Shown: piece by piece, positions 3,962 to 64,000 of the stretch | Position numbering within the stretch: position 1 is the stretch's first letter | Layout of the letters: each line of letters begins with the position of its first letter | Source of the DNA: Salpingoeca rosetta | Taxonomy: Eukaryota; Protista; Choanoflagellata | DNA: 64,000 nt | Direction of reading: 5' to 3' | Assembly: GCA_033442325.1 (NCBI GenBank) | Contig: JAWQFM010000032.1 | Span: forward strand, 446,112 to 510,111 | Translations under genes and position numbers: made by a program | Notes under the pieces: generated by a model | Database searches by the model: none | The model's input: only the letters and a program-made list of their open reading frames with translations | What the model was told of the DNA's origin: nothing

Positions 3962-6549
3962 TCATGATGGCGCAGCCAACAAGGCGACGACTTCTGGGAA
4001 CTTGGCTTGCACGGCCAAGTCGTGCGCTGTCTTGCCTATGCATATGCGCGCGTGCATGTATGAAGGGGCATGTGTGTGTTTGTGTGTGTGTGTGTGTGCG
4101 TGTGTGTGTGTGTGTGTATGGGAATGAGTATGCACGGACGCAACATACGGAGGCGTGCGCTGCTGCGGCACGTCGCGAGTGATGCAAGCAAGCACGCAAG
4201 CAAGCAAGCAAGCACGCAAGCAAACAGGCTTCATGCAGCCAACATGCCAAGCAGGGAACACACAACACAAGCGCACACAGACGTACACACAGACGTGCAC
4301 ACACACACACACAGACGTACACAGACGTGCACACACACACACACACACACACAGACGTACACACATACGTGCACACACACACACACACACAGTCGTACAC
4401 ACAGACGTGCACACACACACACACACACACACAAACACACAGGCACACACCGGAGCTGTTCTTGATGGTGGTATCTGCTCCCAGGTCGAGGAGGGCACGG
4501 CACACCTCCGCATGCCCGTGCCACGCCGCCCGCTGGAGAGGCGTGTTTCCATAATGTGTTTGTGCATTCACATCAGCGCCCTGTGTGCACGCATGACCAT
4601 GTGCGGGTGTGTTGCCGTGAGTGTTTGTAAGATGACATGCATTGAACAACCGCAAGCGCCAAACCAACCAAAGCAATCGCAAGACGATGGTCCTCATATC
4701 ACACACAAACACACACACACACACACACACACACACACACACACACACACACACACACACACACACACACCGCCTGAACCAGCAACTCCACGCAATCCTG
4801 TAAGACATCAATACAGGGGTATGGAACGTCAGTCAACATCTTTACAGCAGCAGCAAAAGGGAGAGCGGGATGGCGTCACACAGCACACACACTCTCTCTT
4901 GCTCGCCTTGAAGTTAGCCTCTGCGGCCCTGTGTAGCGGTGTTGCGCCGTTAATGTCTTGCATATCCACACTCGCACCTAACGACAGCAGTGTCTGCAGG
5001 GCACAGCACGATTCATGAGCGATGAGGTTGGGCTGAGCAGGTGAAGGGGCACAGAGGTTCGCAGACGGATAACCGTGACGGCTGGGCTTGCACTGCGCGA
5101 CGACACAACCACCACGTGCATGTGCCTTCTCTCTCTGTCTCTCTGTCTCTCTGTCTCTCTCTCCCTCACTCTCTCTCACACACACTCCCTCTCCCTCTCT
5201 CTTTCAGACACACACACACACACACTCACTCACTCTCGTTCATACACACACACATACACACACACACTCACTGACACTCACTCACTCTCGTTCATACACA
5301 CACACACACATGTGCACACACACACACCTGCATGAGTTGGGTGCTGCCGTGGGTGGCGGCAATATGTAGCGGCGTCTCCTTGTTGTCGTTGATGGCGTTA
5401 ACGTCCAGTTGCCTCATTGTCGGCACATGCCGTTGTTTTTGTTGTGCTGGGGTACTTGCTGTGATGAGGGTGTTAGTCTTGGGCACGTCGTCGAGCTGTG
5501 CCGCGACGTGCAGGGGCGTGTTTCCGTACTTGTCGCGCACGTTGACGTCAGCGCCTCGCTCCAGCAACACCCCCATAGTCGCCGTGGACAAGGACGCTTC
5601 CATGGCGACCTAAGAGTACGGTTGCGTGTGGGTGTGTGTGTTCGCGCGACGGGAGGGAGGCAAGAGAAAAAGGCACCGTACGTAACACATGCAGCGAGAG
5701 AGATAGAGATACATAGAGAGAGGAAGCAGACAGACGCGAGGAGGCGGTGAGAACAATGACAACAAGCCACCATCGCACGCACACACACATACACACACAC
5801 ACACATACACACACGCACTCTCACACGCACACACGCACATGCAGACACTCTCTGCTGCACTCACGTGGAGCGGAGGCTTTAGGAGAAACTCGTGGCAGTT
5901 GATCTCGGCGCCCTCATCCAACAAGTGGTTGATCTGAGGCCGGGAAGAAGGAGCAGCAAACGGAGGAGCCATCAGCAAGCAAGCAAGCAAGTGATGTTGG
6001 AGTGCAAGGGGTCAGCAGAAGCTGTAACGGCAGTAACGGCAGTGACAGTGATGCCTGCACAGACACAGGGCAGTGGTGTGATCACCGTGGCGACAGCGGC
6101 GCGCTGCTGCACTGCCTCCACGAGCCGTTCATTCAATGCCACCTGCACAATGTATGTTTATGCAGGGTTCGGGTGGAGCTTAATGAGATGGTCGTTGGTG
6201 CTTGTGATGCAGACGAACAGAGTAAGCGAGTGCGAGAGTGAGCATGCGAGTGCGATCAGTGAGCATGAGTGAGTGAGTGAGTGAGCATGAGTGCGAGAGT
6301 GAGCATGCGAGTGCGAGAGTGAGCATGAGAGTGCGAGAGTGAGCATGAGAGTGTGAGTGAGCATGAGAGTGTAAGTGAGCGTGTGAATGTCACACACACA
6401 CACACACACACACACACACACACACACACACACACACACACACACACACACGCACACACACACACACACGCACACACAACCTGTCCCCATGTCCGCTGTT
6501 GTTGTTGTTGCAGCGCTTCATCTCTGCCTGTCGTGTTGTCGTCACTCAT
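3962..6549 (-). CDS. Ankyrin-repeat protein (about 5-6 repeats), 8 exons
   Basis: Spliced peptides INHLLDEGAEINCHEFLLKPPLH, LLERGADVNVRDKYGNTPLHVAA, DVNAINDNKETPLHIAA, LGASVDMQDINGATPLHRAAE, GADVNAQTHYGNTPLQRAAW and GKTAHDLA match the ankyrin G-TPLH / GADVN consensus. Stop at 3962. Confidence 0.92.
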
Positions 6550-61000: not shown

Positions 61001-64000
61001 GATGTGGACGTTCGCGTTGTCAAACCTCTTTTTCCCAGTTGACTTTGCGATTGCTCGCACTCCCCCCCCCCACGCCTTACCCTTTGCTCACATGACATTT
61101 CCACAACATCCCAAGCTCCCGACCCCCTATTTTCCCAACCGACACCTCCTTTCTCACCCCCTCCCCCCTCTCATTGTCCGTCAAACCACTGCAGACGAGC
61201 CACGGCACGCGCGGTATTCGCGTCGTTGGCACCGCCCTCAACTCACAGGCGCGGCGCACATGCAACGTGTACCCTGGCGACGCCGTGTGCAAAGTCAACG
61301 GTGTGGACGTGACGCAAGAGATGCACAACGAGGTGGTTCACCGCATCGCCGAGCACCAGGGGCCCATCGAGTTTGAGGTGCGCTGCTCTGTTTTGTTTGT
61401 GTTTTGTCTGTGTTTGTTTGTGTTTATTTGTGTTTGTTATGTTCGTTTGTGTTTGTTTTTGGTTGTTTGTTTGTGTTTGTTTGTGTTCGTTTGTGTTCGT
61501 TTGTGTTTGTTTGCTTGTGTGTACATGCAGTCCTGTATGCAGTCCTGTATGCAGTCCTGTATGCAGTCCTGTATGCCCCAAGACCACACGACACACCCTC
61601 ACGATCACTTCTGCCCTTCCCTCCTCCCACTCAACCCCAACCCCCGCACCCCCCCCCCTTCCTCATGCCACCACCCTCCCCACCCAAACATTGCACGCCC
61701 ACTCCCACTCCACAACCCCGCCCCCCCCCCCTTCTTTTACTCATTCAGCTTGCGCGGGACTTTCCGCCTGCGCGGCGGTACTTGACGCTGACCCGCTCCT
61801 CGGAGCTGGGCCTCGGGTTCCAACTCGTCTTGGATGGTGGACGGCCAAAGATCAAGGAGGTGTGGTGGTGGTGGTGGTGGTGGTGGTGATATCGTGGCGG
61901 TGCTGGTGGTTGCGAAGACGAGAGAGAGAGAGAGCGAGGAAGAAACGGAGCATGTGATGATGTGATGTGTGGCTGCGACGCGCGCCTTGCTGCAGTGGCG
62001 ACTGACTCACACCAGCCCACCCCCCCCCCTTCTTCTCACGCCCCCATGTCCTGTACATGCACGGCAGGTTGTTCCCAACTCGCCCGCCTTTGAGACCCAG
62101 CAGATGAAACCGGGCCAGTTCTTGCTCGAGGTGCACACCATGTGATTCTCTTGCTGTCGCTACATGCACTGTGCTTGCCGTTGGCTACCCTATTTGTTCT
62201 CTTCGCTACAGTCTCCTTTTCTTGCACACTCATGCACGCACGCACACACACACACACGCACACACACACACACACACACACACACACGCACACACACGCA
62301 CGCACGCACACCTCAAGGTTGATGGTGAGACGACGGAGGGCATGAGCCTGCAGGAGGTGTCCAACATGCTGCGCACACGCACAGAGGTCAACATCTGTGT
62401 TGGGCCCTACCCGTCCGACACCACAGCTGCCGCTGGGAGCAAGGAATCCAACGTTGAGGTACGCAGCGTGATTGAGAGCGTCGAGGGTGGCTGCTGATGG
62501 AGGTTGCGAATGTGCTGCAATAGGTTCTGCGATGTCAAAGTTGTTCTTCGACACACATTTACACATTCATGCACCCTCTCTTACACACATTTACACACAC
62601 ACACACACACACACACACACACACACACACACACACAGCGCGCGGTTGAGCAAGGGGACGAGTTTGACACGGCAGCGGCTGTGCTGCAGTCGATCAGCGT
62701 GCCCCCGCCAGAATCAGAATCGCCCCCGGACTGCCGCACCGTCACGTTCAAGCGCAGCGAGGGCGTGCTCGGCATGCGCCTGAAGAGTCTTCAGAACAGG
62801 CCGGGCGTGTACATTGTCGGCTTTGTTGCAGACAGCCTCGCAGACAAGTGCCCCGAACTGCACGAAAGTACGTTGGAACGCTTGCGCAATGTATCGACCG
62901 TGGTGCCGATAATGTCGATGTCGCTGATCGTGAAGAGCGAAGAAGACAGCTGCAGTGTCCGTTTTATTCTTGAACTCACTCCCTCCTTGTGTACGCGCGC
63001 GCGCACACACACACACACACACACACACACACACACACACACACACACACACACACACACACACACACACACACACACACACACGCACGCACGCACACAC
63101 ACACACACACACACACACACACACACACACACACAAAACAAACACACACACACACACACACACCAATGCAGACGACTACATTGTTGCGGTTGGCGGGCAG
63201 AATGTGGTTCAGGCGTCGCACGAGACGGTGGTGAACTTGATCAAGAACTACAAAGAGGACGAGATCAGCATCACGGTGAGCTCGTACGACCCGCTGGAGT
63301 GGGCGAACAAACGCAGGAGCACAGCAGGGGCAACTGAGGACGCCGTCCAGGCTGCAGCGACAGAGACGGCAACAACCGTGCTGGAACAGGCAGCAGGCGC
63401 TGCCAACACACCACCACCACAACAGCAGCAGCAGCAGTCTGGGGAGCAAAGTGGCGAACAGGATCTCCCGCGCCGCACAGTGACACTCAAGCGCACGGGG
63501 AAGGACACGCTTGGGCTGATGCTGACGGTGCAGCAGCCGAGTGGTTGCGTCGCCATCCTTGGCGCCGTGTCGGGCTCGCCTGCAGACGCTGCTGGGGTGA
63601 TGCCTGGCGAGGTGCTGTACAGTGTCAACGGCCAGCAGCTGCAGGGCATGCAGCATTCGGACGTGATTGACACGCTGCGCCAGACGGAAGGTGACGTTGT
63701 CATTGAACTCCAGGACCCGCCAGGTAACCGCACACAAGTGCTTGGCGCGCGCGCGCGCGCGCGCGTGTGTGTGTGTGTGTGTGTGTGTGTGTGTGTGTGT
63801 GTGTGTGTGTGTGTGTGTGTGTGTGTGTGTGTGTGTGTGTGTGTGCCTTCAATTCCTGCTACCCCCTCATCTCATTCTCTGGTTGCCCGCGCCCATTTGC
63901 CTGTCCTCTCCCCGGAAGTGCCGCCTGTGGACTATGTGCGGACAGTGAAACTGCACCGGGGGCGCGGCGAATCCCTTGGCCTCCGCCTCCAATCCCGCGG
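55055..64000 (+). CDS. Multi-PDZ scaffold protein with a long alpha-helical N-terminal region; truncated by the window end
   Basis: More than 20 GT-AG exons. PDZ1 KTLGLKLQ...[16 protein letters not shown]2 LGLGFQLV...NSPAF...[12 protein letters not shown]3 GVLGMRLK...[14 protein letters not shown]4 DTLGLMLT...[20 protein letters not shown], and the start of PDZ5 RGESLGLRL. Start at ATG 55055 or 55070. Confidence 0.92.
59184..59361. repeat. (GTT)n tract in a PDZ-gene intron
   Basis: Visible array in the 5' part of the intron. Confidence 0.9.
60547..60703. repeat. (ACACA)n pentanucleotide tract abutting a splice acceptor
   Basis: Visible array ending at ...acacaacggcag|CTTGTG. Confidence 0.9.

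Follow-up and report, generated by a model that had tools for sequence, protein, structure and literature searches.

Complementary AC and GT repeats near opposite intron ends are known from teleosts. The teleost (AC)m-(GT)n introns have AC at the 5' splice site and GT at the 3' splice site, and in zebrafish the two repeats co-occur across introns specifically (Lin et al. 2016, Genome Res 26:12, PMC4691745). In humans, short GC-rich introns carry G triplets near the 5' end and C triplets near the 3' end, both of them recognised end-specific intronic enhancers (McCullough and Berget; Lin et al. 2016). In addition, GU repeats of 12 or more units, (GU)12 or longer, adopt a quadruplex called the pUG fold, and pUG sequences in human introns are reported to cluster preferentially near splice sites (bioRxiv 10.1101/2021.12.21.472683). 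We analysed the GT and CA repeats in introns of the choanoflagellate Salpingoeca rosetta along one stretch of 64,000 nucleotides (contig JAWQFM010000032.1 of assembly GCA_033442325.1, positions 446,112 to 510,111; hereafter the window), which holds 301 GT or CA runs of at least 8 nucleotides (nt). On the sense strand of the genes, GT tracts tend to lie early and CA tracts late in the introns. An earlier note on this DNA had described that layout, had rightly stated that in teleost fish such repeats can pair and make U2AF dispensable, there in the opposite order, and had proposed that the repeats are splicing signals, working either as a GU:CA stem that bridges the splice sites or as paired protein-binding sites. 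The polarity probably has a splicing-linked cause: it starts anew in each intron of about 200 nt, in genes on both strands, while repeat density is not higher in introns than between genes. As a general system, the paired stem is unsupported.

The statistics are based on 83 introns in three classes. Sixteen introns (class A) were mapped exactly from the public S. rosetta proteins P0001 (methionine aminopeptidase, METAP2) and P0121 (aldehyde reductase, AKR). The exon translations match these proteins at 97-98% identity, and both genes sit on supercontig GL832986.1 of assembly GCA_000188695.1, whose retrieved loci show no differences from the window. Class B comprises 40 introns of the NAPRT, TNFR-like and acidic-protein genes, delimited by dynamic programming with start, stop and product length fixed to the public values; the same constrained parse recovers the METAP2 and AKR structures exactly. 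It replaced amino-acid composition scoring and an unconstrained dynamic-programming gene finder, neither of which reproduced the public product lengths. The PDZ gene contributes the 27 introns of class C, which were delimited without such constraints. Makorin was excluded because its constrained parse is implausible, and the METAP2 introns at 27157-27517 and 27572-28009 were dropped from class A because homologues show a missing exon there. The left 15.8 kb of the window enters the analyses only through one ankyrin-gene intron and strand-free tests, and 55 bases inside METAP2 intron 3 (26660-26714) were masked in the computations. For the 83 introns, a tract is defined as at least four GT or CA units on the sense strand. 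A GT-then-CA layout reads alike on both DNA strands; single tracts were therefore tested against the public gene strand.

The median relative position in the intron is 0.29 for GT (71 tracts) and 0.67 for CA (47 tracts; Mann-Whitney p = 1.5e-10), with the same direction in each of classes A, B and C, and CA tracts are nearly absent from the first 20% of introns. A sense GT tract is present in 34 of the 83 introns, a CA tract in 22 and both in six; GT precedes CA in all six. The distance from the donor to the GT tract has a median of about 26 nt (at most 4 nt in eight of the 34 introns), and CA tracts lie at a median of about 29 nt from the acceptor. Repeats of at least six units, found in 23 introns for GT and 17 for CA, are mostly within 100 nt of the donor and the acceptor, respectively. 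A polarity index from which splice-site bases are excluded is positive in 27 of the 40 class B introns, in 23 of the 27 class C introns and in 15 of the 16 exactly mapped ones, in the latter whether or not repeats are masked.

The polarity was also found with less reliance on our gene models. In a test without a splice model, which used public strands and codon-score segments, the 5' half holds 82% of 44 GT clusters and the 3' half 74% of 27 CA clusters (p = 1.7e-6). With the splice matrices zeroed, which leaves an uninformed GT/AG model, the non-training genes are polarised in 48 of 66 cases (p = 3e-4). A gap-class test was weakly significant (p = 0.03), and a six-frame flank test without strand information was unbiased at low score thresholds, with a bias emerging at the high threshold only. 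The polarity is a tendency and no strict rule, with a GT tract in the 3' half in 11 introns and a CA tract in the 5' half in seven.

Repeats also flank two genes at ends where no intron is annotated. Around makorin, CA lies 40 nt upstream of the ATG (33739-33755) and GT 11 nt past the stop (37728-37810); around the TNFR-like gene, sense CA is located 22 nt upstream of the ATG (50973-50996) and sense GT 27 nt past the stop (48292-48407). This arrangement could reflect introns in untranslated regions, or an exon-centred, dyad-symmetric feature at the DNA level. Given the identical reading of GT-then-CA on both strands, the introns with both tracts cannot alone separate a strand-specific from a dyad-symmetric cause.

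The base composition of the 83 introns is graded in the same direction. From the first to the last decile, G falls from 0.34 to 0.16 and T from 0.33 to 0.23, C rises from 0.18 to 0.38 and A from 0.15 to 0.24; GT plus TG dinucleotides fall from 0.38 to 0.13, and CA plus AC rise from 0.10 to 0.29. The gradient stays when perfect tracts of at least four units are masked (G from 0.32 to 0.16, C from 0.20 to 0.37). Donors follow the consensus GTGYGT (G100 T97 G63 Y G69 T53), and GTGTGT, GTGCGT and GTACGT are the top three donor hexamers, with 10 of 83 donors each. At position -3, 79% of acceptors carry C; ACACAG ranks with the most frequent acceptor sequences, and the last 40 nt of introns are 34% C and 25% T. 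Tracts of at least five units make up 11.3% of the bases in introns, 10.1% of those between coding regions and none in exons; consistent with this last value, the intronless Q-rich gene of 772 amino acids (30793-33111) is devoid of GT and CA tracts. Since tract density is alike in introns and intergenic DNA, the abundance of the repeats is a property of S. rosetta non-coding DNA, and their orientation and position are the only intron-specific features.

At a GC content equal to that of S. rosetta (55%), Monosiga brevicollis has only six such tracts over 22.7 kb. Polarity is absent from its ten METAP2 introns (2 of 10), which have T-rich 3' ends, with 35% T in the last 40 nt versus 25% in S. 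rosetta. In the GC-rich alga Micractinium conductrix, the eleven METAP2 introns reach 0.42 G at the 5' end and 0.53 C at the 3' end, with almost no microsatellites. A look-up of Capsaspora METAP2 found nothing.

A lack of excess co-occurrence would, according to the earlier note, refute its proposal, and no excess is seen in the window. GT and CA tracts share an intron in six cases, versus 9.0 expected (odds ratio 0.45, 95% confidence interval 0.13-1.41), and the result is similar for introns of at least 200 nt and with a looser 'rich window' definition. Within 120 nt of splice sites, the two co-occur five times across introns (8.4 expected) and seven times across exons (6.8 expected). RNAduplex energies between 5' and 3' ends average -32.9 kcal/mol for the same intron and -36.0 kcal/mol for different introns, same-intron duplexes thus being slightly weaker. 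In the 72 introns folded, the whole-intron minimum free energy (MFE) averages -50.8 versus -50.1 for dinucleotide shuffles, with a mean z of -0.13 and z below -2 in 11%. Bridging 5'-3' pairs number 22 in the native sequences, 16 in full shuffles and 25 in shuffles that keep the composition of each half. With co-occurrence below expectation, and duplexes and folding at the level of shuffles or cross-intron pairs, the GU:CA stem lacks support as a general system and is a real prospect for a minority of introns only. The last METAP2 intron is an example: (GT)13 and (GT)34 lie 41-143 nt past its donor and a CA tract 26 nt ahead of its acceptor, and its predicted fold gives the one clear, long GU:CA stem among these introns, of about 60 base pairs (MFE -171 kcal/mol, z -8.7 versus shuffles). 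In AKR intron 4, the MFE structure pairs positions +3 to +17 with -3 to -17, yet it is no more stable than shuffles (z -0.8).

Like the teleost (AC)m-(GT)n introns, those of S. rosetta have complementary AC/GT repeats near opposite ends in a microsatellite-rich genome, and a minority of them could, from the predicted folds, form a bridging hairpin, with weak pyrimidine tracts at such acceptors. Repeats at both ends of one intron are found in 6 of 83, and additionally in the ankyrin, testin-like and makorin introns of Table 1; this does not apply to the other 93%. In contrast with teleosts, the order is GT 5' and CA 3' in all six of these introns and in the positional statistics, there is neither excess co-occurrence across introns nor a general excess of folding stability, and the bias extends into non-repeat sequence, in a choanoflagellate and not a vertebrate. 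Because they differ in order, co-occurrence and stability, we do not assign S. rosetta introns to the teleost class, although a few could work in that way. The human G-triplet introns are skewed in the same direction as those of S. rosetta, where an excess of G past the donor and of C ahead of the acceptor is present, also after masking. A small stability gain over shuffles is a shared feature. In S. rosetta, however, the skew is carried largely by GU/CA dinucleotide repeats, not by G or C runs.

We lean towards an explanation in which a G-rich-5'/C-rich-3' intron code sorts the orientations of a heavy load of GT/CA microsatellites. S. rosetta non-coding DNA bears this load throughout, at about 10% of bases in introns and intergenic DNA. 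The donor-proximal 40% of the intron is a G/U-rich, C-poor zone, and the donor consensus GUGYGU is itself a short GU repeat. The acceptor-proximal part is C/A-rich and G-poor, which would combine a C-rich stand-in for the U-rich pyrimidine tract with avoidance of G and AG before the 3' splice site. One GT/CA repeat can be transcribed as GU or as CA, and the GU form would suit the 5' zone only and the CA form the 3' zone only; therefore, slippage would seed and expand the compatible form and selection would remove the other. The two intron ends would act independently and single-stranded, and pairing would be incidental, strong only in the few introns with both long tracts. In favour of this explanation are the graded composition with and without masking, the polarity of the exactly mapped introns, the repeat-like donor consensus, the T-poor 3' ends, the even tract density and the missing pairing signal; the repeat-free skew in Micractinium, the lack of polarity in microsatellite-poor M. 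brevicollis, the human G-triplet introns and the length variation of GT microsatellites between isolates also speak for it.

Several points weigh against this explanation. The polarity, the G-to-C skew in masked and unmasked sequence, the missing pairing signal and the even repeat density are observed, whereas a sorting role of selection on splicing is inferred from them. The gradient left after masking could partly consist of decayed old repeats, and the bridging pairs predicted above the level of full shuffles may point to a generic structural contribution. Two modelled minus-strand genes are weakly polarised (17 of 25), and 67 of the 83 introns are predictions of our own models. One window was studied, and the cross-species comparison covers one gene per species.

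That the repeats are active protein-binding splicing enhancers seems unlikely. On this account, a TDP-43/CELF-like factor would bind (GU)n near the donor, and (CA)n near the acceptor would be bound by an hnRNP L-like factor, without any need for pairing, which would agree with the strong positional sorting of both tract types; separate factors would also be compatible with the independence of the two ends. The RNA motifs near S. rosetta splice sites are the same as those bound by TDP-43/CELF (UG) and hnRNP L (CA). hnRNP L binds CA repeats. One of the better-known mammalian arrangements has CA repeats downstream of a 5' splice site, as in eNOS intron 13, a placement opposite to that in S. rosetta. 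The other has UG repeats near the 3' splice site, as in the CFTR case discussed by Lin et al. (2016), and this placement is likewise opposite to that in S. rosetta. TDP-43 has a very high affinity for GU repeats. The 83 introns contain twelve sense (GU) tracts of at least 12 repeats, potentially long enough for the pUG fold and situated for the most part in the 5' half, but most polarised introns carry shorter tracts or none. The GT tract is missing from 59% of introns and the CA tract from 73%, and the repeats are therefore not required. Repeat density is equal in introns and intergenic DNA, and the lengths of GT microsatellites are not tightly fixed, as they differ from one S. rosetta isolate to another (Levin et al. 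2014).

We also consider improbable a purely mutational origin, in which slippage is seeded by repeat-like splice sites (GTGYGT donors, ACAG acceptors) and expands inward with no selection on tracts or composition. The three commonest donor hexamers together account for 30 of the 83 donors, ACACAG is frequent among acceptors, some GT tracts begin almost at the donor, and the microsatellite load is high everywhere. The pattern is absent in M. brevicollis, so it is dispensable for choanoflagellate splicing. Nevertheless, most tracts are not contiguous with a splice site, as their median distances indicate, the G-to-C skew persists after repeat masking, and a similar skew is present in Micractinium without repeats. 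Seeding alone also leaves the near absence of CA from the first fifth of introns unexplained.

A further possibility, which we hold to be doubtful, is a lineage-wide intron-definition code, opposite in order to that of teleosts and of separate evolutionary origin. In place of the U-rich pyrimidine tract there would be a GU-rich zone at the donor and a CA-rich one at the acceptor, and each intron would zip co-transcriptionally with its nearest partner, as all 5' and 3' zones would be generically complementary; the microsatellites would be the strongest form of the code.

Structure-based intron definition, in which the GU-rich 5' part would pair, in a specific manner or as a generic co-transcriptional zipper, with the CA-rich 3' part, and so join the splice sites and relieve the need for a pyrimidine tract, is quite unlikely in our assessment. 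Such a mechanism is experimentally established in fish, all six introns with both tracts have the same order, and pyrimidine runs are shorter at acceptors preceded by CA tracts (median 3 versus 5). The predicted folds of the last METAP2 intron and of AKR intron 4, and the number of native bridging pairs relative to full shuffles, would also agree with it. Set against these, both tracts are found in only 7% of introns, below the expectation under independence, and their co-occurrence is no better across introns than across exons, unlike in zebrafish. Duplexes within an intron are slightly weaker than those between introns, the mean z is close to zero, and bridging does not exceed that of shuffles which preserve the composition of each half. 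Lastly, it is highly improbable that the polarity was produced by intron delimitation, even though most introns are our own predictions and GT-rich donors served to train the splice-site matrices, given the polarity of the exactly mapped public introns, the test without a splice model and the uninformed GT/AG model.

Table 1. Introns, genes and assembly gap of the window, with positions counted from its first letter (aa, amino acids)
Feature	Coordinates	Strand	Product	Remarks
Ankyrin-repeat gene intron	4036-4450	-		Sense GT = plus-strand CA 4298-4433; sense CA = plus-strand GT 4071-4117
Testin-like intron, splits LIM domain	15565-15973	-		Sense GT = plus-strand CA 15790-15906; sense CA = plus-strand GT 15596-15731
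Testin-like intron	18606-19213	-		5' part GT-rich; 3' part CA tract, then (CTCA)n to acceptor
NAPRT intron 2 (modelled)	24642-24775	-		Sense (GT)40 from donor, no CA partner; length-constrained model (548 aa)
METAP2 last intron	29534-29865	+		Exact map of P0001
Makorin intron after C-terminal CCCH finger exon	37214-37558	+		GT 19 nt past donor; interrupted CA mid-intron
AKR intron 1	51445-51704	+		GT tract begins at donor, no CA partner; example of the commoner GT-only class
AKR intron 4	52356-52603	+		Exact map of P0121; GT tract 4 nt past donor; CA into acceptor AG
AKR intron 5	52658-53056	+		GT tracts in 5' half, short CA tract more 3'; z -4.6
PDZ-gene intron (modelled)	62459-62638	+		(CA)22 directly into acceptor AG, no pyrimidine tract
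PDZ-gene intron (modelled)	62868-63171	+		Mostly CA tracts (81, 42 and 22 nt), no GT tract; PDZ domain in next exon
Testin-like gene	up to 20345	-	619 aa	Public call
NAPRT	20821-25124	-	548 aa	Public call
Assembly gap	25300-25399			Intergenic, between the divergent start codons of NAPRT (25124, -) and METAP2 (25816, +)
METAP2	25816-29908	+	383 aa	Public call
Q-rich gene, intronless	30793-33111	+	772 aa	Public call
Makorin	33793-37717	+	660 aa	Public call
Acidic protein	38456-47685	+	2222 aa	Public call
TNFR-like	48434-50951	-	328 aa	Public call
AKR	51181-53973	+	328 aa	Public call
PDZ protein	from 55010	+	2781 aa	Public call

The individual introns of Table 1 include the six that the earlier note had cited for the layout, and GT after the donor with CA before the acceptor is present on the sense strand in all of them. 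Its coordinates for the METAP2 and AKR introns are exactly those of the public introns, and those for the ankyrin intron (in reality 4450-4036) and the first testin-like intron (15973-15565) are off by 1-3 nt, with reading frames and domains in agreement. CA runs straight into the acceptor AG at 52603 and 62638, as it had stated; near 63170, the CA tract stops 8 nt short of the AG (63171). The LIM, ANK, CCCH and PDZ pieces are borne out by Pfam. ANK repeats are found in the exon adjoining the ankyrin intron, and for the testin-like intron that splits the LIM domain, a LIM half-domain was detected and frame continuity was read from the sequence. The boundaries of the makorin intron are those of the earlier note, supplemented with the GT..AG ends, our own makorin model being unreliable. 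In the other testin-like intron, about 30 CTCA copies (18606-18745, minus strand) directly precede the acceptor, and the CUCAC unit resembles the branch-site consensus.

Two repeats of other types were seen in the window: a (GAC)16(GAT)26 triplet repeat downstream of the testin-like gene (15061-15187), and, within a modelled NAPRT intron (22541-22783), some 210 nt of uninterrupted or near-uninterrupted GAT/ATC. An open frame of 872 amino acids (889-3504, minus strand) with poly-Q runs and a likely membrane segment had no relatives in a word search, and an Rfam search found nothing.

Microsatellites also call for caution with the assembly. The gap between NAPRT and METAP2 is flanked by (CA)22 on either side (region 25234-25446) and probably represents an assembly failure through the microsatellite; no frame or intron used here crosses it. 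One METAP2 exon was apparently lost in a repeat as well. In the region 27157-28009, the public METAP2 model is short of about 40 catalytic-core residues relative to homologues. A stretch of 10 residues is encoded at 27411-27440, and the next 30 or so residues of choanoflagellate homologues are absent from the assembly, within (TGTA)n. The missing exon is probably due to assembly collapse in the repeat rather than to a broken gene.

Of the closest living relatives of animals, S. rosetta is the one most used as a model for experiments, and our literature search found no paper on its intron repeats, pyrimidine tracts or short-intron definition. With GT/CA repeats making up about a tenth of non-coding bases, their orientation predicts gene strand and exon borders, which is useful for gene models. 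The contrast with the zebrafish AC-GT introns, which have the same repeats in the opposite order, those of S. rosetta being apparently unpaired, bears on the choice between a structural and an end-specific reading of such repeats. Together, the G/U-to-C/A polarity that resets in each intron and the weak U-rich tracts suggest that 3' splice-site recognition in S. rosetta is unlike that of M. brevicollis and animals. As S. rosetta can be edited, the pattern is testable in the organism itself.

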